Shown: positions 29,491 to 60,100, counted from the stretch's first letter. The stretch: DNA of 64,000 nt from Eutreptiella sp. 'Long Island Sound 2002' (GCA_964036045.1 OZ038379.1:9052001-9116000); one strand, 5' to 3'. Program-made: numbers and translations. Notes: generated by a model not told the origin, from the sequence alone.

Positions 29491-30587
29491 CATATTATCC
29501 GTTCTTTCTTGACGGCAATCTAGAAGCTTTGCTTAACCACCAAGCACCGGGAAGGTTGGTTTTGTGGTTTTCAGAGCTTGCAGATCACAAACCGGGTGGT
29601 GGATCACCAGAGTTCTTTGTTGGATGTGCCCCTCACCCCAATGGGTCCCAATTTTGTGGACTATGTATTGCGTATTGTTAATGCTGATCGCGCTGTACGG
29701 GTTATTGAACCGCCCGGTGATGATTTGGAGGGTCTGACTGAGCTCCCTTGCCCTCCAGAACCCCCCCCCCCCCCCCGCACCCAAGTTGAGGGTGCATTTT
29801 CGGGCACCAAGGAGAGCTTTTAGGCCACCCCCACCCCACTCGAAGGCAAGGAGACCCCCGCCAAGCAAAGCGTGGAAGGCCCGGAGGCTAAGGCGCAACC
29901 TTCCATGGCCACTCCCATAGAGGAGGACACCCGTCCCTAGGTCCTCATCCGTGGAGAGTGGTGCAAGGTGCCGGATGGCTACGTGACAGATGCATCCAAC
30001 TAGCTAGAGCGTGACCAGCTTTTCATCAATGACTTGGCCAAGCAGCTAGTAGTGGAGTTGCGTGCCGCTTGTCAGCTTAACACCAATCCTTGGGCGGGCC
30101 GAGACTTGCTCTGCGGGGGGGTTTGGTTTGGTTTGGGTCAAGGCTTGTGCCGGACGCCTGGGCCCACGGTCAGCTCACACCTCTGTGCTGACACGACTGG
30201 GCTAGGCGAATCGCGGTTGTCCGGTCTCAAGGCCTGCTGGACTGTTGACCGCCCCCGTACCCCGTGGTGGCACACACGGGAGGGAGATGCCGCCGTGCCT
30301 GTGTGTGTGGCGCGCGCGGGGCAGGGGGGCAGGGCGTGCATGCTGGTGGCGCTTGCAGGGCATGACGGGTCACACGGCTACACCGCGCCTGGCCCTGCCC
30401 GCTGGCGCCGGTGCCGCTCTGGTGTTTCACGCCCCCCCCGCTGCGGCTTGGTCCGTCTGCGTTCGCGGCCGTGGGCTCTGTTCGCAGGGGAGGGTGCGTT
30501 GGGGGGGGGGGGGGGCACACTGGTCCTACCTCTGCCTCCCTGAGCACGTGGAAGAACCAGGAGTCGCTTTGGGTTGTGGCTGGCAGT

Positions 30588-33500
30588 TCACTGTGTGGGC
30601 TCGGGTGCCGGCTGGAGGGCCCAGCGGTGGCCCACACCGGCAGAGGCAAATAGCCACAGTGGGCCCAGGGCATAAGGCTGCAGTGGCAGTGGGAGAGTCA
30701 GGGCTTGGTCCCCAGGAGGTACGGCCGTAAGCAAGGACACGCCAGCCCCCGGGGGCTGCTCACCTGACTCCGCCAATAGGGCGATTGCCCAGTAGAGGGT
30801 CTCTGGCGGTGATACTATAAGGCGTATCGGCGGTCCTGGGTGCCAGCGCGGCTCCACCGGTAGAGAAACATGGAGCTGACCTGCACTGCACACGTGCCAC
30901 GACGCCAGGCCCCGCACCAGGTAGGCCGCCGCCAAGGTATATACCCAGGGCATGTAGCTCTGAGGGTCACGGATGGTGACCGCTGGGGGCTGTGGCGGTG
31001 GCTGGTCTGGGGAGCAAAGCGGGTACGGCAGTGAGGCCCAGAGGGCCAGCACCTCAGGCGGGGACGGTGCAGGCCGGGGCAACAGGCTTACAATTACTCG
31101 TGCGGCCCGTCGCTTAGTGGCGGCGGAGAGGACGGCCTGGTCGCTGTCGGACATGAGGAACCAGAGGCCAGAGAGCGTGAGTACGTTGCCATTGTCGGCG
31201 TGGCCTTTCACGTAGTGGGCGTCCCAGGAGCATTGCAGAACAGGATGTCGGTTCTGGTCGAGGAGTACTCCGTCGGCGGTGACGGCGGCCCCACTGGTCG
31301 GGGTAACATCGAGGAGGAGCAAGGCACGGGCGTGAAGGAGATGTAGGTACGCGGCGGGGCAGCGGCTGCGGACGTGTCTCCAAAGCTGGTGCTCCGAGAC
31401 GCCGCAGAAATGGCACTCCATGGCGATGTCGGGGTCTGGGGGTGGCTGCCACTCCAACGCTCGGTACGCGAGCGCACGTTTGATGGCGCGTGTGGGCAGT
31501 TCGCCGGACTCTAGGAGGTCGTAGAAGGGGCCCCCATCCGGTCGGAGGCACGAGGCGCGGCGGCCGGTGAAGTAGGCTGCAGCTGCGGCGTCGTCGTACG
31601 CTCGGTCGAGACCAATCTGCGGCTCAAGCAGCAGGGCCCCTTGGTAGTACAGCAGCAGGGGCGAGGGGAGGTGCTGGGGGAGGGGGACCGCCCATGGGGT
31701 TGGGGTCGAGGCGCCACGGGCGGCGAGCTGGTGGGCTTCGCGGTTGAGGAGGGCCAGCACGTGTGTGTCCTGGGTGTCATGCTGGGTAGGACACCACACC
31801 TCATGGTGGGCTCGAAAGTGGAGGAGGGTGGGGGCGAGGCTCCGCCAAATGAGTTCCAGAATGGTGAGCTTGGGGGGGAATCGGGTGTAGGCGCGGTGGA
31901 GCGCGGAGGTGCCGTCAAGGGCTGACGTGAGGCACCCTCGCCAACCCTGCAGGAGGTGCAGGGCCACCAGGCGGGCCAGCCACTCCATGCCTGTGGGGGT
32001 GGCCCACACGCGAAGGCCGTACCAAGCGCGGAGGACTATGCCCGTGCCTGGGGCATAGAAGACCATGCCCCCGCCTCCGTGGCATTGGTGGAGGGCGGCA
32101 TCAGTGGAGACGATGAGGTGCAAGTGGGCGTGCAGGAGGGCGGGGTCGGCGTCAAAGCAGATTGGCATAGCGCGGACAGAGGAGTCTAGGAGGACGGCTG
32201 CAAGGGGGTGTGCTTCACTGCCCGCGACGCTAGTGGAGCTGAGGTATCGGGCCGACACGTGAGCTAGCAGGCTCCGGGAGCAAGTGGCTTGCGTGTAGGT
32301 GAGGAGGAGGCGGCACGCGGTGCGGAGGGGCAGGTTGGGCAGCCCGGGCCCCCGTAGCGGGGGGGCAGGGACAGGAGGGCGCGGGAGACCCAGCACGGAA
32401 GGCCCAGGACATGGCGGTAGAAGGCCCGGGTCTGAATGGCCAGCTCCTCGATGTGCTGTGGGGGAATGGCAACACCTGAGGCGATGAAGTCCAGCTGGGA
32501 CAGGACAAAGGCCCACAGGGAGCGTAGCGCCAGGATGGTGTTCGTGGGGACGGCATCGACGCGGAGGCACATCCGCCGGGCCTGCTTGGCGAGGTCGGCA
32601 TAAGCCTGTGGGGGCTGGAGCGCATGGGACAGGGGGATGCCAACAACCTAGGGGCAGTCGCGGGAGGTGTCGGTGAGGTAGAAGGGCACTAGGGATGATA
32701 GCTGGACTGGTCCGGTTTCCCCTAGTCGGAGAGCAAAAAAGCGGAGCTTATCCATGTGGACAAGGCCGCCCTTGGCTACTGTGGCCCGAGTGCAGAGGCG
32801 GGTCAGGGCCACCAGGGAGGGAAGGGTGGGGCTTACCAAGCGGCGATCATCGGAGTACGACAAGTTGTTGATGGGGATGCCGGTGGGGCCTGGGGGTACC
32901 TGGACGTCGGTGGGGTGGGGCAGGCTGCCACTAACCACCAGTTCGCCGACTTGGTAGGTGTCACCAGAGGGGTTGTCGCCCTGGTTCCACCCCTCATCGG
33001 TGACATAGGGCGGGGCGAACCCGTCCTCCGCCAAGGGATGTATGCGGAGGCGCCCGTAGTATTTAACGGCCCACGGGCCGAAATCCTAGGGCAGCTGGAG
33101 GATGCTGTGGAGGGGGGTGCAGTCCTCCTGCTGTTGGCGGAGGAATGCGTCTGCTGAGTCCCACTCCGTGATGGCCGCTGTGCCGTGGGTCTCCAGGCTA
33201 GAGAAGACGGCTGCCCGGAAGGAGAGCGCTAAAAATGCCGGCCGCATGTCGGAGCGGTAGGCAAAGGCGTCGGGGGGAAGGGTGCCCGATACCTCGAGGG
33301 AATGCACCAACATGGTGCGGGCGGCGCGGGACTCGGTGCGAGTGAGGGGGGAGGTGGGGGTGACGGGACGGTGGGCTTTGAAGAGGTGGGGGAAGGGTTT
33401 ACCCTTGTCGATGCCCATCATGACGGAGTCGAGGGAGAGGGAGTCCATGCCGGCGTCTACGAGCTGGAGGTGGCACTGCACACCCTGGACTCCGCCGTGG

Positions 33501-35794
33501 CGCAGGTGGTGCAGGAGTGCCTGCGGGCACTGATCCAGGCCCGCGAACAGGGAGCCGGCTGTGGTGGCCGATGCCCAGACGCGATCGTCACGAAGGACGG
33601 GTCCTGCCGCGATGGATCGGCTGTAGAGGCCTCGGTGCTGGCAGTCTCGGGGGTCCAGACCTGCAGCCAGCAGGTCGCCGAGCAGGGGGGCTGGGATGTG
33701 CGCGATGGGGTCGAAATACTGGTCCCACTTGGTCGGGTCGTACACGGCCGTGAGAAAGTCGCGGTCCAGGGTGTGGCCCCGATGTGCTGTGGTGGCGGCC
33801 GCTTGGTCATGGATTTCCTGAAGGCGGGCACTGGGAGAGGACAATGTGGCGCCGATGTCGGGTAGGATGCCGCTGTAGGGGCAGAGTGGCTTGGAGGGGC
33901 GGCAGAGGGCACCCTTGGTGGCTGAGGTAATGGAGGTGGTGCGCAGGACGTCGTCTGGACGTTCCACGCCGTGGCGCGCGGCTGTGCTGGCCAGAAAGTC
34001 GCGCAAGTCCGCCAGTTCGGACTCGGTGCGGGGGGCTGAGCGGAGCCGGAGGTCTCGTAGGACGTGGTCGAGAGGTCTGGGGTCGACGGGCGGCGGCCCA
34101 CAGGGACTAGTGGTAGGCATTCGGGCCAACAGGGTATGAGGAGAGCCAGCCCCACAAAAGATCCACCAGGGCGGCGAGGCGAGGGAGGGTACCTGGTGGC
34201 GCGTGGCGCCAGCGGATCATGCGCAAGCTGCGCACGGCGGTGAGGCCCTCCATGGGCTCTACGGTGACCAAAAGGGGCTTGTGGGGCGTGAAGGAGGGGA
34301 GGACGTCTGCGTCGGGGATGGACCGGGCGCCGCGGGTGAACACGTGATCAATGCATGTGGCTGTGTGGACCCCTTGGGAGGAGGAGAAGTGCGTAGGGGT
34401 GTCAGCTGGGAACGCCGGCCGGAAGCGGAGCATGCAGCCGGTGCCGCGGCATGCGGCCGCGAGCGGGTTGTGCGAGCTCTCACGGGACATGTCAAAGTCC
34501 CCTCCGATCAGTTCCAGGGCCGCGCGCAGGTAGGCAGCGAGGGTGGTGAGGTTGAGCAGGACAGCGCGACGGCCCTTGTAGTCCAAGTGGGGGTGGACGT
34601 TCACGGAGGCGAGCACGATGAAGCCGAGAGTGTGATGGCGCACCGTGGAAGCCAGGAGGTCCGGGGCGTCGTGCTCCACTCGGGGTTTCGTGGCTGGGTG
34701 CTGGAGGGAGCGGCGCCAGCCCACCATGAAGCCAGTTCCGCAGCCTTCGGCGGAGCTGGTGTGGTAGGCGTAACTTGACGGCAGGGCCTGCAGTAGCGGC
34801 TCGAACGCCCACAGTTCCTGCAGCGCAAAGCAGTCGACTTCGAGGGCAAGGCTACGCCGCCTATGTTCCACGAGAGGAAAACCAATCCGGCGTGGCGGCG
34901 CAGGTGGAGTGGTGAGAAGGCGAGGGAGTGCTGGTGGAGAGCCCAGGGGGGGGAAGGGAGAAGCAGGGTGTGGTCGGGGTGGAAGCACGATGCACCAGGG
35001 CGAACAGGGGCAGCTGGGACGCCCTGCAGGAGTGGCTGGCCAGGGGGGCGGACAAAGGAGCGCCGGGCAATGTCGGCGGTGAGGTGTGTCCGGCCTGAGC
35101 ACGGGTGAAGGCACATGGCATTGGGAAGTAGGAGGGCTGAGGGGGGGGGGGGTGCTGGATTGTGGCGGCTGGGACTTGGGGGCGGCCACAGGTCGGGCAG
35201 AACCACGCTGCGATGGAGATGGGGACTGGGGGGGCTGGAGTGAGCCACAAACGGTGGCCCGGGGCGCCATGGAGGGACGTATTGTAGTGGGCTCGGGGGG
35301 GGTGGCCAGGGGGTAAGGTGAGAGGGAGAATCATCGTAGAACCACGTCACATACCCATTGACGGTGAGGGGGATGCTGATGACAGGGTCGGGGTCACTAC
35401 TGTGGACGAGGTGCTGGGCCTGGGTCAGCCAGAGAGCGAAATGGCGACGGGTCTGAAGCATCTGTTGGGGAGGGGGCCGGGGGCTGCGCGTGGGCTCGAC
35501 GGGTGGGGGCAGGGCGGCCGTGAGCTGCGAGACGAAAGAAGCTTCGTCCAGGGAGAGGGGGGAGTCGTCTGGCGGGGGCAGCAGGACATGGCCAGAGCCG
35601 TGGCACCGGGGGCAGATCCAGGCAGCCTGGGCTCGGGCGGCGACGGTGCCGCACTGCCAACACGCGGCTGGGCACAGGCTCTCGGGGGACGGGCTGGGGG
35701 TCTGGGGTGGGGATTCTGCTCCCGGTAGGCGGGATAATAGGGACGCTGCTCGAGCGGCGAGGCTGTGCAGGTCTCGGTGCTGGGGATACGCCAA
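30588..35794 (-). pseudogene. LINE pol: Cys4 finger, AP endonuclease, RT, RNase H, CCHC knuckle, unknown C-terminal domain; disrupted
   Basis: Motifs CWQC..CPRC; FLSWNIGG / DCFALQE / GGDFD / CIDHVF; EWDSADAFLR, GWNQGD, SYSDD; STDAA, MEWLA, LDG, LNREAHQLA; CHFC..HV..C. There are TAG stops at 34107, 33086 and 32648 plus frameshifts. Confidence 0.88.
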
Positions 35795-35874
35795 GGCGCA
35801 GTCCAGGGCCAGTCGCGTGAGAGGGGTGGACGGGAGGGCGCCGGGGGGCAGGCAGAGGGGCAGGGCTAGTCAGT

Positions 35875-37023
35875 TCACACGGGACCCCTGAAATGGAGTG
35901 ACTCGGTGGGCAGTATGGGGCGCGTCTCGTGTGTGGGGCACGGTCTCGTACGTGCGGGGCGCTTGTGCGGAGGCGGAGGGAGCTCTGCTGGCGTTGGTGG
36001 AGGTGGTGAACCCCGGGGGGGGGGGTGCGCTGGGGGGGGCATGTCGCTGAGGCGGTGACCAGTGCGGCGGTTCTTGGGGGCCTTCAGGCGTTTATTGGGC
36101 GGAGGCTTGACCGGGCTGTCTGGGAGGAAGAAAGGCTCCCCTTTGGCTGTGCGGGAGTCCAGGGTGATGGTATAATGATGGTGGGGGTCGACATAGGTGC
36201 GTGTGGGGGCACTGGCGAAGAGGGTGCGAAACGGACTCGAGGGGACGGACACAAAGTGGGTGCCTTTGCGGAGGGCGTGAGCCGGGATTGCGATGGGTGC
36301 TCCTACATGGTGGGTGAGGGCGGTAGACGCTTGGGTGGCATCAGGAACCGTGCGAAGGCCCCGGAGAAGAATAACCTGTGGGGCGTCGACGGGTGCTGGG
36401 GGGAGGAGGCCGGTCGGGGAGGCCCCGGGCGCCTGAGGAGATGATGGAAAAGGTAGTGGGCAAGATGGCTGGGGCCAGGTGCCTGTTGGGGGGATTGGCG
36501 ATGGGCCAGGGGGGGGCAAGTGTGGGGGCGGGACCGATGCACGCCTTTCGAACCACGCGTAGGCCGCCGCGGGGCCGGCTGCTAGCTGTAGGGCTGTGCG
36601 AACCTCGGCGATCAGTTGGTCGAGGCCCTGCGTGCGTGTGGAGCCCTGAACCGCCGCTGAGACGGCTACGCGGAAGGTCACTGGGTCCCGTACCGCGAGA
36701 AGCAGGTCGGTCGCTTGGGGGGGGATCACGGTGGGGCGGGCGGCCAGGAGTGTGGCTGCGCCGGAGGACCAGACGAGGTCATGACGCGCGGCGGCGGTGT
36801 CGACGAGGGGTTCCAGGGTCTGGAGGGCTGCGAGCTTGTGGCACTCTATGGCGGAGGACCCGTGGAGGTCTTCTACGGTGGAGATGAGGTCGAGCAGGTT
36901 GGCTTGCAGGGAGGGGCGCAGATTGGTGGGGGATGCGTACCACACTGTTTTAACGGCTGACGCTAGGGAGCGGCCGTTCTTGACAGACCGCAGGGTAGTC
37001 ATGGCGCTCTCGGGGATGGACAT
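35875..37023 (-). CDS. LINE ORF-B (382 aa, ORF1/gag-like, Pro-rich); may be frameshift-joined to pol
   Basis: Helical N-terminal half, Pro-rich linkers, a VILLRGL segment that is possibly RRM-like, and a basic KRLKAPKNRR stretch. Confidence 0.6.
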   Translation of the reverse strand: MSIPESAMTTLRSVKNGRSLASAVKTVWYASPTNLRPSLQANLLDLISTVEDLHGSSAIECHKLAALQTLEPLVDTAAARHDLVWSSGAATLLAARPTVIPPQATDLLLAVRDPVTFRVAVSAAVQGSTRTQGLDQLIAEVRTALQLAAGPAAAYAWFERRASVPPPHLPPPGPSPIPPTGTWPQPSCPLPFPSSPQAPGASPTGLLPPAPVDAPQVILLRGLRTVPDATQASTALTHHVGAPIAIPAHALRKGTHFVSVPSSPFRTLFASAPTRTYVDPHHHYTITLDSRTAKGEPFFLPDSPVKPPPNKRLKAPKNRRTGHRLSDMPPPAHPPPRGSPPPPTPAELPPPPHKRPARTRPCPTHETRPILPTESLHFRGPV

Positions 37024-37662
37024 GTCAGTGCATAGGACACGGATGGACTAGGCGACGTGCTCGGCAAATAAAGCAGACAAAAGCACATAGAACTAGCATG
37101 AATGCAATAGCCTGGCAAACGTTGTTGAACGCACAACAAATGAGTATAGGCCAACACACTTCATGCACAGACAACACAGTCAATGACACAGCAAGCAGAG
37201 TGAGAGGACAACAAGAATATGAAAGATGAGCTGTGGCATGCTGAGCAAGTTGCACATATTGGCAGGAAGACATCCCACATAACATACGATACAATATTTT
37301 GATTGGCGAAACATGGCAGAACACAACCCATGTGCACTAGCATGCAACAAGTCAAGGACAGCACAGTTAAAATGTAACTTAGATGCAACATGTTCACCAC
37401 TGGCATCGCGGGTCCGCCAGAAGTGCATGCAACAAAGTCAGTGCACACATGTCGCACATGCACAACGAAAGGCAGCAGCCATACGGCTATCTTGTGAGCT
37501 TTGTGAGTCATGCTAAATGTACGATTGAGTTCTTGCTGCAATCTTCTTGCGCCGAGGCTTGATGCACTGTGTCACTGCTCAATGGTAGCGGCTCTGATCC
37601 ATTCTGATGTTTGTAACTATCAGTTGCTGCTGTCCCTGTCGTCTGTATTGTTGTTCTGATCG

Positions 37663-38499
37663 TTATGCATCATATTCGTGCTTCTGCTGTGTTGGCCTGT
37701 GGCCGTCTGGAGTGGTCGCGAGCCTTTCGATATCGGAGGTGAAATCGGTGGAGGCGGCTAGCGTGACCGGCTGCGTCAGCATCCGTTTCCACAGAGGCTC
37801 TGAGGAGGCGGAGGTGCCTGCGAGTTCGGCCCGTTTGATTGCTATGCGAGATAGTATCCCGGGGCACGTGAGGGCGGACTTGTGCCGAGTGATCTCGGCG
37901 TTCCACTGCTGCGCGGAGAGGGGGCAGGGGGCGGGAAGGCGGGTGTCCCCCTGGGGGGTGATCTGGCATCGCAGGGGCTTCTTGTGGTGGGAAGAGTGCC
38001 AAGTGAGCAGCCAGTGGACGAGGGGGACGCGGTCAATGGGCCGTTTGGGCAGCTCGTCAGCTGCCAGGAGCATCAGGAACTGGTCTGGGGAGGCTGCTCG
38101 GAGGGCATCTGTGAAGGGGCCGACATGTGCGGCCGCGGCCTGCTGCAGCTGGTGGGGCGCGTCTGGTGGGGCGGCAGCCAAGTACGCGATCAGGTCGCTC
38201 ATCGCCGCCTGGTACGTACTCCAGTGGAAGTTAGCGTCCCTCTGCTGCAGCGTGCCAATGTCCAGCGGTGGCAGGGCTTCGACCGCGACCGCCCAGAACA
38301 GGCAGAGCGCCCCGAGCATGGCGTCGCAGGGGTGAAAGGCCTCCACGGGCGTAGCTGACTCATGGTGTGTGACCGTGAGCTGCAGCTTGCCAGAGGCCTC
38401 GCTCCAGCCTACAGCCGTCGCTGGCCAGGACTGCGCAGGGCGGATGTCGGCTGCGCGCTGGGCTGGGGATTTGCCGGCGAAGGGATGCTTGGGTGCCAT
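37663..38499 (-). CDS. LINE ORF-A (278 aa, unknown function; may extend to about 37400 past a stop or frameshift)
   Basis: ATG-initiated, GC-rich, protein-like ORF inside the TSD-bounded element; no domain recognised. Confidence 0.55.
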   Translation of the reverse strand: MAPKHPFAGKSPAQRAADIRPAQSWPATAVGWSEASGKLQLTVTHHESATPVEAFHPCDAMLGALCLFWAVAVEALPPLDIGTLQQRDANFHWSTYQAAMSDLIAYLAAAPPDAPHQLQQAAAAHVGPFTDALRAASPDQFLMLLAADELPKRPIDRVPLVHWLLTWHSSHHKKPLRCQITPQGDTRLPAPCPLSAQQWNAEITRHKSALTCPGILSRIAIKRAELAGTSASSEPLWKRMLTQPVTLAASTDFTSDIERLATTPDGHRPTQQKHEYDA

Positions 38500-39917
38500 G
38501 GTCCACCCGCGGAGAGTGCGAGGAGGGGTGCGGCTGGGACAGGGGAGGGTGTGGAACGAAATCTTAGGGTCAGGGCAGGAGCAAGGGAGCCAAGCAGGTG
38601 GGGCTAGGGGCGCAACGGAGAGGGGGCAGGCGAGTACTCGGGTTGCGGCGTTCGGTACAGGCCACTCGCGGACCGGGGGCGTGTGGTGCTGGCCTTAGGG
38701 GTGTGTCGTGGGACTGCGCTGCGCGCGCACAAAGGGCCGGGGCACAGGGCAGGAGGCACAAGCAGGAGGCACACAGGATGGTGGGGTTTGTAATTTGGGA
38801 GGAGGAGAGGAGGAATATGAGTTGCGGCGGTTCCGGGGCGTCCTGGCTGGGGGCGGACGCGGTGCTGACGGTGTCGCATGGAATTCCCGGGGCGGCCGGG
38901 AAGGACAGAATGGACGTTCTAGACGTGGTTGTCGACGTTGGTTGTAGTGGCGTCCCGGCTGTTCGTGTGGTCGTCGGGTGTGAACCAGGGTCCGCCACCA
39001 CCGGGCCCTGGCTGCTATTTGTGGAGGCGTGTGTGTGGGGGGGGGGGGGCGCGTGTGGGGGGTTGTGTGATGCCTGGTGCTCCAGGCCCCGGCAGGGAGG
39101 CCATGGGAGCCTGACGCTGAGCCCGCCGGGGGAGTGTTCGGTCTGGACACGCCGCCTCCCGGTTAGTGACATGCTGCCAGCGGCCCCACGACTGCATGAG
39201 GCACGGGGGCACGCTCCCTGGACGCACGACTGGGGGGTCCCACACCTCTTGACTGCCCTAGGCACAGGAGGTGTTGTCGTGGACTGGACCATCCGCCCAC
39301 GGCTCTGAGGGGCGGCAGGAGGAGGGGCTCCAGGGCGCGCTGAGCGCTGCCCTGCCCTGGAGCCTGCCCGGGCTCGGGGCCTGGGTGGTGGTGCTACTGC
39401 CCGCGTAAACGGGGGGGCCCCGAGGGCACACCACCCGAGTGACCGCTCCGTTACTCTGCGGGGGGGGTGGCACGGGCGCGCTCAGAAGGTGGGGGGGGGG
39501 TTGGCAAAATGGGCTTCCGTGCCGGGACGCTTTGTTATGTGGTTTTGGCAGTTTTGGTGCAAATTTTGCCGGCAACAAAGAGTGTCGTGGGCTGGCATGA
39601 TACCCCCGCCGATGGTTGAGCGGATAGTAGGCCTTTTTTTGTGAAAGGCCGGGGACCGGTAGCCTTGACATTCCACTCATTTCCAAGTGTATGAACCTCC
39701 TATAGGGGCAGCCATGGGAGACAAGGGAAAAGAAAAAACTGATGACCGGGGACTCCAGCAGTGATTCCAGCGAGGACACAAGCTCTGATTCCAGCGACTC
39801 ATCAGGGTCGGCTTCTGATTGAGACGCCAATCTCCAGGGTGCCATGGTTCGGCCTGGGTGGGGCGCTGCATGGCAGCCGGAACTGACCGGGGGTCATTGT
39901 ACCCTTAAACAAAAGTA

Positions 39918-55099: not shown

Positions 55100-55570
55100 T
55101 GGCGTCTCGTTGAGATGCGTGGCCGATAAGGCATACCCTAATGGTTACATGTACCACTATTGGGAATCCGAGGGAATGTTTTGTCAAACGCCCCAGACAG
55201 ACCAGCATGTGCAACCATTATGGACCGTGGCGTTGCCATGATTCCGCTCTCCGAAAGGGGCCGTACTGAGGACTGGCGGAGGACCCAAAAAAAGAAAGCA
55301 AACCAATTTAAAAGAGATCATCCTTGCCTTCCTGCCCTTGTCCAATTCCCAACCTCAGTGGTTGATAGGGTTCAAATTTCTAGTATGCTTTGGGGCCTTT
55401 CTCGAGCAGGTTAGATCTGGGACTACAATTTGCGACACTTGTTCAAAACTAGTGCACTAGCCCACCCTCTCGTGCAAACAACGCCCATGTCCAAACAACA
55501 CAAGGTGTTGTTTCCGCAACTCTTGGACCTGCAGGACCTTAAAAGGCTGACGTGTTTCCGCAACCTTTGG
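55100..55570 (-). pseudogene. Highly decayed Ty3/Gypsy-like pol fragments left of LINE-2
   Basis: Shares DNA with the Gypsy remnant at 59346-59390 and with 60575-60605. AHAGLSGAFDKTFPRI resembles an integrase HHCC segment. Confidence 0.35.
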
Positions 55571-58500
55571 ATTTGGGGGGCAGGGAAGGCGCCAGGGGCA
55601 CCCCTCCCCTTCCCAAGCATAGGTGGGGAATATGAGAAGCTCCTGGGGGGGCACCAAGGCCCCCTTCCTCTTCCCAGCTAGAGCTGGGGGGGGCCAGGCA
55701 GCACAACGTAAGACCGCGGAGGAGGGGAGGGATCACAACTTCACGCTGTCCCGGTCGCAATAGGGAGACAAGCTGCAAGGCCTCGGCCCATGGCTCGCCC
55801 TAGGGGGCACCAAGGAGTGGTTGACCACAACTTCCCCCTACCCCAGGCAGGTTTCAACTGGGGGAAGGGGGACCGCACTCACCCCATCCCTACGCCAGCA
55901 TACTCTTTTCAAATAGCTAGCCCATGGATGGCAGCGGCAAAGGAGCCCCGATCCCTCCCTCCCCTAGGGATGGGAACCGCCATCCTGCCCCAGTTTTTGA
56001 CACTGGTCTGCCGAGCCGGCGCAGTAGCCGCCTTCCAGAGCGCGGGTGAGTTCTGGGACGGCGACTGGGATGAAAACGATGCCTTCTTGAGGGAGCCCCG
56101 CGATGCCTGTGCTCCGCTCATGGCGGCGCTTCCTGATGTGTGGAACTTCGGTGCGTGGGCAAATCAGGTCTACAGCCACCTGCGGATCCAACCCGTCACC
56201 AGCGAAGGCCTGGCACCCCCGTTCCGCACAGGCGAGGGACGCAACCAAGGTGATTCCTTCGCAGGGGAAGGCTTCCAAGCGACCCAGTGCCTGATCAACT
56301 CCTGCTTTGCCCGCCAGCCCGGTGGCCTCACGATACCCAACACCTTCGACCTCCACTCCCCACCGCTGCCGTGTGACCGTGTCATGTTCGTCGACGACCG
56401 CCACTTCCTCGGCAGCTCCCTACGCGCGGTCACAGCAGACGCGGCGACGTGCTCCGTTCTTTCCACTGGAGTAGGCCGCGTCGTCCACCCCTCCAAGCTC
56501 CAATTTCACGGTGTGCGCCTGACGGCCGGGAGCCTCCATGCGATTTCCACCCACGTGCCGTTCTCTGACAAGCCCTCGTCAACCCAGCCCCCGGCCCCGT
56601 TGAAGATCCCCCTCCTCCACGACTTGCCCATGACGGCCAAGATCTCCAAGCTCCTCCAACTCATCCGCTCGGTCTCAGCCGCCGCCCTCCGCCCCGACCA
56701 CCGTCCCATACTGCAACTTCGGGCCCTTCATGTGCACGCCCTGTCCGCGTGCGACTACGTATGGCGCGGAGTCCATTTCCCCCGCCTCCAGCTAGCAGCC
56801 ATGCAGGCCTCCGTGGACAAGCACTACCGGCGAGTATTCGGGCTACCTTCCTGGGCACCCCGGCGCTTCCTCCGCCTGCCGCTGACTGCTGGTGGCCCCC
56901 AATCTCCGGACTTGTTCACGCGAGCCGCCCTCCTGCTGGCCAGTACCTATTACGCGGCGTCCTGGGGCCGCAACCCATTGGCGGCGTCGGCGGCCCGCTA
57001 CCTGCTGGAGGTCAACGGCGTGGCAGGATGGGCGCCAGAGGGCGCCGTCATGCGCCGCGTATGGCTGCCTCTGGGCCTCGATTTCGTCCCCCTACCCAGC
57101 CCCTCCGTCAGCCCCATGGTTATCCACAGCGCCGGCAGCCTGGACCCGCTGCCAGCCCTCAAGTACGTCGTAGTCGCCATCGACGCGGGCCTCCTGGGGA
57201 GCCGCCTCAGTGGGGGCCTGGCAGCTTGGCACCCGAGCCTCGGCGTTTTCTATCAGGCCTGGTGGGGCCTGCGCGCGTATCAGGCATCCGCTACGGATGC
57301 AGAGTGGATAGCCAAGATAACAGCAATGCTCTTGCTGCCGCCGGCCGCGACGGAGGTGTACATGGTCTCCGATGCGAGTGGGGCGCAGCACCTCAATCTG
57401 ACACGTGGCCCGGCTCCCTTCTCGGTCATCAACGTACTGTACCGCAGGGCCATTGCACGCTGGGGCGTGTGCCCTCCGAAGGAAGTCTGGTTGCGCGCTG
57501 GACATAACACTGACAGCCGAGCGCAGCTTACACAGCTCAACCGGGAGGCCCACGAACTCGCCTGTCGCGGACGCCATGAAGCACGAGCGTATACGGCGCC
57601 CTGGCTACCACTGTTGCACGGACGCGTGGCTGCGTTCTGGGCTGGACAACTGATCGTCGACGTCTCCGCCTTCGAATCAGTGCAGAGCGACTCCGCCTAG
57701 GCCGGCAGCCTGCCGCGGCTCCAGCCCCCACCTTCGCCACCAGCCCACGCTGCTTTTGTGGCCGCCTTCCTAGCGGGGTCAGTGCCCCGCCTTGCCCTTC
57801 GACGGGTCTACGCGCTGCGCCTCTTGGACCGCCGTCACCCACCTGCAGCCCTCACCGCGTTGCGCTGTCCGTTCTGTGACGGCGTTGTCGAGGACTTGGT
57901 GGTACACCTACGTGCTGCCTGCTGGCACTACTTGGGCTTCGTGGTCTCCGCGTTGGGAGCGTTGTGCTGGCTGGACGGAGTTCGCCGACGAGTTCAAGGG
58001 CCCGCCCAGCGGCCAGCGTACTGGGTTGCCGTACCCGACGGCGTCGTGGGTCTGTGGGACCCCCTACACCCGGGCGTGGCAGCCCCCCCTGGGCGGCACG
58101 CCCTTGTATCCATGACGGCAGAGGTTTGTGGAGCGGACAATGAGGACAAAGCGATGGTCTCAGAGCTGCTGCACGTGCTGAGCCGCCCAGCGATGCAACT
58201 AAGCCATTTGCTGTGGCGGGCTACGGCTGTCGACCATGCGATTCAAGCAGGGTGCGAGCGACGCCCCGAAGCTCTAACATACCGGCAGTCAGCACTACTT
58301 GGGGTGGTAGTCCGCGTGCTGCCCCGTTGGGAGGTGGCGCCAGACACCCTGTCTGCCCTGCCCCTACCCCCGCCCCGAAGCCTTAGCCCCGGCGGTGGCT
58401 GCCTTGTGGTGGTCGCCTTCGCGGCTGACGACACGTGTTTTCTGTGGCGCGCGCTGCTGCAGCACCTTCCACCAGTGTGGCTGCTGACCCCGGCCCTAGC

Positions 58501-59345
58501 GCCAGCCCTGCGTGCGCAGTGGCCAGCGGATCTATATGTCCACCAGTTAAGCCCGGATGCAGTGTTGCTCTGGGAACCAGGCACCCAGGTGGAGTACTGG
58601 AGGCTATAAAGCAGCACCTCAACAGAGGGGCAGAGGTTCCTGCAGCGTGCGCTGTCACACCGCCCTTCCAGCCTGATGCCGGCCCTGCGTGTGCAGGGCC
58701 CCGCGACTCGCTACTCGACACGGCCCGAAAACGCCCGGATGCAGCGCAGTGCATGTCGTGCTTGCAGCTTAGCGACCCAGGCCCGCCAGCGTCCCAACAC
58801 TATGCAGTGCTTGGGCAGGCGGTAGGCAGCCAACTCCCCCCCCTCCGGCCCGCGCCGTGTGGCGCCCGGCGGAAGGCAGCGGGGACCCGGGGGACGGGGG
58901 GAGGGGGGGGGGACCGAGGGGGAGACGAGAGCGACGCGATGGACGCTTCGCCCACCGCGGTGTGGCGACGTCCAGCCCAGCCTGGCCGGGGCGGCCGTAT
59001 CCGGTGCGTCCGGTGGAATCGGCTCCAGGCACTCAGACACCAGACAACAGACACTAGGGATGGGAAGAGGGGAGCACAAGGGGGCTCCGCAGAGGGTGCA
59101 AAGGTCACCAGGGCCACAGGGGGTGAGCACGGTGTGAGAAGCGGCATCCCAGAGGGTGCAAGAGCCAGTGGGGCCGGAGAGGGATGGATGGGGGGCACCC
59201 GGACGGATGCATGGGAGGGTGTCCGGCGAAGTGACCTGGGCCATTGGGGCGGGTCCTTCCCTCGCGCATTAAGGGCGAGGCATAAGGAGGTGGCACGCCC
59301 TCACCGTTAGGTCCTGTCTCTATGTTGACCTCCGTACGCACAGCG
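55571..59345 (+). mobile_element. 5'-truncated LINE related to the 30122-39453 element (RT, RNase H, CCHC, C-terminal domain)
   Basis: ORF 55790-57700 plus in-frame 57701-58609 after a single TAG. Motifs DWDENDAFLR, GRNQGD, MFVDD, AIDAG, AEWIA, SDASG, LNREAHELA and CPFC..HL..C are collinear with the first LINE. Confidence 0.88.
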
Positions 59346-60100
59346 TGCAGGACCTAAATAGGCTGACCTGTTTCCACAACTTTTGGAACCCTTGAACCAG
59401 GCGGTTCCATTTTCTGGTTTTGGATGACGTCACCATTCGACACCTCGTGCGTGAGAGGAACCATTCCAACGGCATCTACTGTTGGAGTTGCCAAAGGGCG
59501 AAGAAACACACTCAACCATATTCGTTACGAGTCTATTACAATCATCAATGCTAGTGTGGGAAGAGGTTGAGCATCACGCATGCGGTCCTTTCTGGGTGTT
59601 TGGTGGGTGTCGAAGGGGTGATCAACACCTGGTCCCAGCCGCTGTTGCTGTCACGGCTGTCATTCATATCTGTCGAGGCCCATGCAATTTTAGAGCACAT
59701 AACCCCTTCATCCTTGATTATATCTTCAATGACCGGGAGGGGAAAGCGCTCATCAACAACTAGAGTATTGAGTTGGTGGTAGTGAATGACCAAACACACT
59801 AGCTATTAGGCTTGGGCACTACAAATGCCTTTGCACCCCACACAAACTGAGATTTTTGGGGGAATCCCCATCCTGCCGCATCATGTATCACGCAAAAGTG
59901 GTAGGGGGGGCACTTTTGGGGTTTGCGGTTTTCAGAATTAAATGGGATTGCGTGCTCCCCGTCAGGTCTGAGGGTGGTGGAATGTGCCTCACCGATAGGG
60001 GTGTGGTGAAAAATGCGGCTTTTGGACTCATTCCCCAGTCTAGCACGGGCACTGTCAGAGCGAGAACCTCTTGTATATCAGCTTCTGGGCCGGCCAACTA
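59346..60100 (-). pseudogene. Ty3/Gypsy reverse transcriptase remnant
   Basis: Reads WGAKAFVVPKPNS..LVIHYHQLNTLVVDERFPLPVIEDII, DM..SGWDQVLITP, SIDD, LTHEVSNG across frameshifts. Confidence 0.7.

Follow-up and report, generated by a model that had tools for sequence, protein, structure and literature searches.

The question raised by a 64,000-nucleotide stretch of the euglenid Eutreptiella sp. 'Long Island Sound 2002' (GCA_964036045.1, OZ038379.1:9052001-9116000; this whole stretch is referred to below as the window, and the host assembly measures 2.28 Gb) is what kind of long interspersed nuclear element (LINE) occupies positions 30122-39453, where a 9.3-kb element on the minus strand carries APE, reverse transcriptase (RT), RNase H and CCHC domains in that order. 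A first-pass annotation had described it as a full-length LINE with three open reading frames (ORFs) and a divergent RT, probably representing an undescribed euglenid lineage. By all tests run, namely the APE domain, a LINE-type RT and signatures of target-primed reverse transcription (TPRT), the element is a LINE. Taken as a whole, with stop-codon readthrough and targeting included, the best explanation is that it is an end-to-end complete yet dead copy of a two-ORF, APE-type LINE, and we consider this likely.

Copies elsewhere in the genome bear directly on the number of ORFs. A genome search with the 4.2 kb at the 3' end of the element produced 1760 first-look candidates, and the candidate copies comprised one of 94% identity, at least a dozen of about 86% (subfamily A1) and several of 72% (subfamily A3); naturally intact copies were used as the reference in place of a consensus. 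Upstream of the polymerase ORF (pol) the window does contain two open minus-strand frames of the annotated lengths, 278 amino acids (aa) (ORF-A, 37663-38499) and 382 aa (ORF-B, 35875-37023), each beginning with ATG, as in a genuine three-ORF LINE in which they are distinct genes. The spacer between them, however, is a 633-bp insertion unique to the window copy and missing from all eight other copies fetched from the 94%, 86% and 72% nucleotide subfamilies. The last 12 codons and the stop codon of ORF-A fall within this insertion, and ORF-B begins just past it. Intact copies of the 86% subfamily have a single ORF1 of 664 aa (L013:2940-4931) followed by an ORF2 of 1783 codons. Similarly, the metagenome contig L042 encodes a 693-aa ORF1 upstream of an ORF2 product (P0004) with about 30% identity to family A, the family of the window element, over the ORF2 alignment, and residues 3-600 of the family-A ORF1 align with the L042 ORF1 at 28% identity (E 9e-52), continuously over the insertion point. 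The appearance of ORF-A and ORF-B is thus attributable to interruption of a single ORF1 by the 633-bp insertion in this copy. On these comparisons the two frames are halves of one 664-aa ORF1 and the three-ORF appearance is an artefact of a damaged copy; the proposed extra ORF does not stand, and a true three-ORF element is so improbable that it can practically be dismissed. The ORF1 region of the window is laid out as follows.

37699 to 38499, minus strand: ORF1 residues 1-267, equivalent to ORF-A, which then enters the insertion for 12 codons

37066 to 37698, minus strand: copy-specific 633-bp insertion splitting ORF1

35873 to 37065, minus strand: ORF1 residues 268-664, with a frameshift after PPPAHPPP near the C-terminus; ORF-B is part of the same segment, its end read in the shifted frame

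The inserted segment is AT-richer than the surrounding element and matches only itself in the 2.28-Gb genome. A search of it for a target-site duplication (TSD), spliced-leader ends or GT-AG ends found none; it may have arisen as filler DNA during repair of a break, by template switching or through some other event. ORF1 itself is under strong purifying selection, with a ratio of non-synonymous to synonymous substitution (dN/dS) of 0.12–0.17 between subfamilies A1 and A3, and because of this it is taken to be a real gene. No ORF1 match was obtained in Pfam, in the PDB (by profile) or among ESM Atlas features, and Pfam was equally blank for the conserved C-terminal block. No Transposase_22 domain, the type found in L1 ORF1p, was matched in Pfam, and no CCHC zinc knuckle, as carried by ORF1 of I, Loa and R1-type elements, was found in ORF1 of three families. 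Reading the V-x-R-L and RG-Y-G-F motifs as resembling an RNA recognition motif is only a guess. Two copies of the 72% subfamily (L019 and L020) have in common a switch from frame 0 to frame 2 (-1) in the proline-rich linker of ORF1, at about aa 445-485, where the two frames overlap at length; the switch may be a programmed frameshift or may stem from a defective master that was copied in trans.

The ends of the element were defined by the 13-mer CTCTGCGGGGGGG, which has just two occurrences in the 64 kb of the window, 30109-30121 and 39454-39466, against a shuffle expectation of 0. Both the 13-bp TSD and the (CCAAA)3 tail that had been claimed were recovered, the latter as (TTTGG)3 at 30122-30136 on the given strand, and the 5' terminus, (T/C)AACGGAGCGGTCACTCGGGTGG, is common to other full-length copies. 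The description of the element as full-length thus holds for both ends; it fails for the coding region, since pol carries about three frameshifts and two in-frame stops. Long terminal repeats or other terminal repeats were sought in the element and none were found, nor did an Rfam search of the window give any match. Variable TSDs, the 3' simple-repeat tail, the absence of long terminal repeats and the presence of 5'-truncated copies, many of the candidates sharing the 3' end of the element, together constitute the signatures of TPRT. The terminal features are the following.

39454 to 39466, minus strand: upstream copy of the TSD, in element sense CCCCCCCGCAGAG, terminating a longer C-run

38500 to 39453, minus strand: 5' untranslated region, about 954 nucleotides

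30137 to 30590, minus strand: ORF2 stop codon (30588-30590) and 3' untranslated region

30122 to 30136, minus strand: (CCAAA)3 tail, abutting the downstream copy of the TSD

30109 to 30121, minus strand: downstream copy of the TSD

Comparison of junctions between copies suggests a preferred target. Of the 12 copies for which a 3' flank was available, nine terminate in (CCAAA)3 and the other three in near variants of this CCAAA-type tail, and in every case a run of C4-C13 comes next. The constant position of the C-run directly past the tail is what would be seen if the run were the element's own tail rather than a target preference. Against this, in all four full-length copies the C-run recurs, together with unique bases, ahead of the 5' end, where the TSD starts within the poly-C tract, and the run is hence part of the TSD; moreover the upstream run is longer than the downstream run in three of the four, as expected for a bottom-strand nick inside a pre-existing G-run. 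We accordingly regard the own-tail explanation as very unlikely. The window element was inserted by TPRT into a poly-C/poly-G run; in the mechanism proposed for this, APE would nick within G-runs and the G-rich primer end would pair with the CC of the CCAAA tail of the RNA. The window copy later gained the 633-bp ORF1 insertion, the frameshifts and the stops.

The window pol is spread over frames 1, 0, 1, 1 and 0, and comparison with an intact relative showed frameshifts near 34870, 34150 and 32360 and in-frame stops at 33086-33088 and 32648-32650; the pol of this copy is dead. In intact copies the order within ORF2 is zinc ribbon, APE, RT, type-1 RNase H, CCHC and C-terminal region, and ORF2 domains have dN/dS values of 0.09–0.30 between A1 and A3. 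The corresponding features in the window are given below.

30591 to 35869, minus strand: ORF2 remnant (1783 codons when intact), with about three frameshifts and two stops

35600 to 35662, minus strand: zinc-ribbon-like motif, CxxCG...CxxC, between the UGA stop of ORF1 and APE, conserved in three families

34290 to 34844, minus strand: APE (endonuclease/exonuclease/phosphatase) domain

32160 to 33460, minus strand (approximate limits): RT, fingers, palm and thumb, including both in-frame stops

33137 to 33163, minus strand: RT motif WDSADAFLR

32975 to 32992, minus strand: RT motif GWNQGD

32846 to 32857, minus strand: RT motif YSDD

31700 to 32130, minus strand (approximate limits): type-1 RNase H domain, with STDAA at 32094-32108, MEW at 31974-31991, LDGTS at 31905-31922 and NREAHQLA at about 31728-31745

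31359 to 31415, minus strand: C-x2-C-x9-H-x4-C (CCHC) motif, CHFCG...C, followed by a conserved C-terminal region of about 260 aa

The annotated order of APE, RT, RNase H and CCHC in pol was confirmed by a Pfam match to PF03372 for APE, by fold matches for RT and RNase H and by the CCHC motif. The APE match, at E 2e-5 for the window copy and E 1.7e-13 for an intact one, was all that Pfam returned for pieces of the window and for the intact ORF1, RT, RNase H and C-terminal sequences. A family APE profile searched against the PDB found L1 endonuclease (L1-EN) nearest (E 1e-9 to 1e-11) and did not match the TRAS1 and R1 endonucleases. In the window copy the sequence GGDFDM at 34488-34505 replaces the GGDFNM of intact copies, the Asn of the conserved GDFN motif having been lost in the dead copy. 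An AlphaFold2 run on a 6-sequence alignment had a predicted local distance difference test score (pLDDT) of 39.7, and nothing in it beyond the RNase H region could be used. Over about 130 residues the RNase H fold corresponds to that of type-1 RNases H (Z 13.8 for LC11-RNase H1 and 12.5 for E. coli RNase HI), with D, E, D and H conserved, and the RNase H profile gave no significant match to PDB sequences (RNase HI at E 0.015, amid antibody noise). At the last catalytic position, normally the Asp of AD-LA, about half of the aligned superfamily members have Asp; families A, B and C have His there. No restriction-like endonuclease match was found for the C-terminus of ORF2.

The three RT motifs listed above are those to which the annotation had drawn attention as atypical, and they lie where it placed them. 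It had further proposed that a second, very diverged relative in the window shares these oddities, and such a copy, carrying WDENDAFLRE, GRNQGD and FVDD, is present.

55712 to 58606, plus strand: 5'-truncated copy of sister family B (RT, RNase H and CCHC), with about 31% aa identity to family A

This family-B copy is flanked at 55528-55572 and 59348-59392 by imperfectly matching direct repeats of about 45 bp (GCAGGACCTTAAAAGGCTGACGTGTTTCCGCAACCTTTGGA-like), which represent either an unusually long decayed TSD or insertion of the copy into some other repeat; its 3' end shows no (CCAAA)n tail. When 1.84 billion cluster representatives were searched with a joint profile of families A and B, 490 proteins were retrieved, 284 of them at E<=1e-10. 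The motif variants, DWDxxDAF for motif A, G-x-NQGD for motif B and Y/F-S/V-DD for motif C, are kept in intact copies under selection and in a superfamily of at least 284 representatives, which bears out the earlier view of them as features of the lineage rather than products of decay. Sequence divergence of the RT is such that a single-sequence phmmer search of the PDB gave no match, and Pfam RVT_1 (PF00078, gathering threshold 29.6 bits) matched neither family A nor family B, even with the isolated RT. Across the superfamily RVT_1 matched 7 of 40 members at E<=0.01, the best at 3.7e-7; the member P0046 scored 27.1 bits, under the threshold. For a profile built from a 40-sequence RT alignment the best match was the R2Bm RT (E 4.6e-16), ahead of other R2 RTs (about 1e-11) and L1 ORF2p (1e-3).

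An AlphaFold model of the RT made from the same 40-sequence alignment reached a pLDDT of 89.3 and a predicted template modelling score (pTM) of 0.88. When compared by Foldseek it gave template modelling (TM) scores of 0.76–0.77 with R2 and 0.67–0.74 with L1 ORF2p, all other RT classes being at 0.53 or below, and TM scores of 0.80–0.84 with ESM Atlas LINE RTs over all 431 residues. The RT is truly divergent yet, as modelled, has the fold of a LINE RT. Three helices in residues 364-438 of model m16d7b26a22c9 (P0001 960-1034) weakly match the helical part of the cap adenosine methyltransferase PCIF1 of zebrafish (Z 10, 71 residues); in the confident RT model these helices make up the thumb, which aligns with R2 and L1.

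How ORF2 might be translated is suggested by its junction with ORF1, which in the window reads UGA CUA G.

35866 to 35872, minus strand: ORF1 stop UGA (35870-35872) followed by CUAG, ORF2 continuing in the same frame

ORF1 and ORF2 share a frame across exactly one UGA-CUN in A1, in the pair formed by the window copy and the 94% copy, in A3, and in two distant families, those of L042 and L043. The stop is always UGA followed by C, and the in-frame arrangement occurs in three families at or below about 30% identity. No AUG is present between the UGA and APE in A3, where the first Met is codon 389, or in L042, where it is codon 301, and the zinc ribbon, which lies past the stop and ahead of any conserved AUG, is conserved in all three families. 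In addition, the C-terminal half of ORF1 is fused to the post-stop region in P0020, an uninterrupted protein of 2007 aa in which a Trp (UGG) is aligned with the UGA. The single in-frame UGA, the AUG-less lineages and the Trp-fused relative suggest programmed readthrough, in which leaky decoding of UGA-C, probably with insertion of Trp, would yield ORF2 as part of a fusion with ORF1, in a manner likened to gag-pol production in some retroviruses. As in gag-pol of gammaretroviruses of the murine leukaemia virus (MLV) type, a structural ORF precedes an enzyme ORF in one frame with a single stop between them, the leakiness of that stop being inferred here; MLV has UAG and a downstream pseudoknot, whereas here there is UGA-C(U) with no detectable structure, in an element of a different class.

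Several points weigh against this interpretation and the wider one to which it belongs. RNA folding 3' of the UGA in four lineages gave z values between -1.7 and +1.7, with no conserved stable structure of the sort that would stimulate readthrough. Constraint is weak over the 135 codons directly after the stop (dN/dS 0.53), internal initiation is possible in subfamily A1 from an AUG that forms codon 136, and the case for readthrough is purely comparative. The poly-C preference was derived from 12 three-prime junctions and 4 complete TSDs, and the ORF1 frame switch common to two A3 copies would, if not programmed, mean that broken masters are still copied in trans. The codon-136 AUG, the weak constraint and the lack of a stimulating structure also favour an element with two ORFs in which translation of ORF2 begins by termination-reinitiation, at a non-AUG codon or at an internal site, as has been suggested for SART1 and human L1. 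Such mechanisms are documented for LINEs, the listed modes of ORF2 translation being reinitiation (SART1, L1) and 2A StopGo (L1Tc), with readthrough not among them (PMC5972666). In L1 a 63-nt spacer with reinitiation contrasts with the single in-frame stop found here (PMC5972666). Reinitiation would leave the frame free, yet the two ORFs are in frame with one stop in all three families; the invariable UGA-C, the two lineages without an AUG ahead of APE and the continuous ORF of the relative with UGG in place of UGA likewise speak for readthrough, and we judge reinitiation or internal initiation to be unlikely.

Because the contig L042 (ENA ERZ27267618; 10386 nucleotides) ends in about 66 A, it may represent, in assembled form, the polyadenylated transcript of a bicistronic element of full length. 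L043 (Logan SRR8925817) has a (CCAA)3-like tail at its end, then CCC; SRR8925817 is cited in a gene-catalogue paper on biogas-plant metagenomes (PMC7842101). Wider searches gave few names. Cluster look-up of the superfamily proteins returned no names or taxa, one JGI member being labelled 'ribonuclease HI', and the best 150 matches of a HMMER library search included unnamed relatives and no named LINE. Word-index searches with the RT-RNase H region, an RT-to-C-terminus profile and a full ORF2 profile found only family-A proteins of ENA assemblies. The element is one of a large and strongly diverged LINE superfamily, which numbers thousands of candidate copies in this genome and has further members in environmental assemblies.

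This superfamily was compared with named LINE clades by domain order, gene features and profile and fold matches. The order APE, RT, RNase H and Cys/His motif is that of ingi/L1Tc and other I-group elements, and type-1 RNase H lies downstream of RT here as in the I group. Ingi is a LINE clade of kinetoplastids and the present host is likewise euglenozoan; TPRT with TSDs is a further likeness. The neighbours of the protein among ESM features include arthropod RVT_1+RNase_H clusters and Tad1-like ascomycete clusters. These observations are consistent with a fast-evolving branch inside the described RNase-H-bearing I group (Ingi, I, Tad1, Loa, Nimb), most plausibly within Ingi, rather than a new clade. 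On the other hand, sequence searches reached no named LINE, RVT_1 misses both families and all but a minority of superfamily members, and the APE profile is nearest to L1-EN, with TRAS1 and R1 endonucleases unmatched. Ingi/L1Tc elements of trypanosomatids encode a single ORF with a C2H2 motif and end in an A-rich tail, and L1Tc also carries a 2A peptide at its N-terminus. The present element has instead a separate, novel 664-aa ORF1, an in-frame UGA junction, a CCHC motif, a (CCAAA)n tail and poly-C targets, and a 2A peptide was sought in it and not found. Membership of the I group is on balance somewhat unlikely.

Two further clades each share some features with the element. R2, for which RT structures are solved (8gh6, 9nl3, 9dou), provides the best profile and structure matches for the RT, including a GG-G-P motif in the thumb, and also has a zinc-binding motif N-terminal of the enzyme domains. 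R2 has a C-terminal restriction-like endonuclease, a single ORF and a ribosomal DNA target, with no APE and no RNase H; in the present element APE is present. Human LINE-1 and the L1 clade resemble it in having two ORFs, in the APE, for which the L1 profile match is closest, and in the RT fold. The sequence match of its RT to L1 is weak, however, and unlike L1 it has RNase H, while family A ends in (CCAAA)3 rather than a poly(A) tail and has an ORF1 without a Transposase_22 match. No description of Euglena LINEs was found in the literature collection searched, and it is plausible but unproven that the lineage was previously undescribed. The boldest reading, to which we give somewhat less than even confidence, is of a deep, euglenid-centred LINE lineage outside the named clades, which would express its endonuclease and RT joined to ORF1, in gag-pol fashion, through programmed readthrough of UGA-C, take G/C homopolymer runs as its specific targets and have an ORF1 of no known fold.

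For annotation of this locus, these results mean that the three-ORF reading arose from one damaged copy. In the published assembly of Euglena gracilis 1.49% of sequence is assigned to LINEs and 32.7% to unknown repeats (PMC11252322), and a LINE superfamily that is invisible to Pfam and has thousands of candidate copies would account for part of this unknown-repeat gap in Euglena; profiles of the superfamily would help annotators to find the remaining LINEs. The poly-C target rule offers a simple, testable case of insertion-site specificity. The conserved ORF1-UGA-ORF2 arrangement, together with a natural Trp-fused relative, allows a direct test of whether LINEs use stop-codon readthrough for their expression; if they do, this would be a mode of translation not documented for LINEs.

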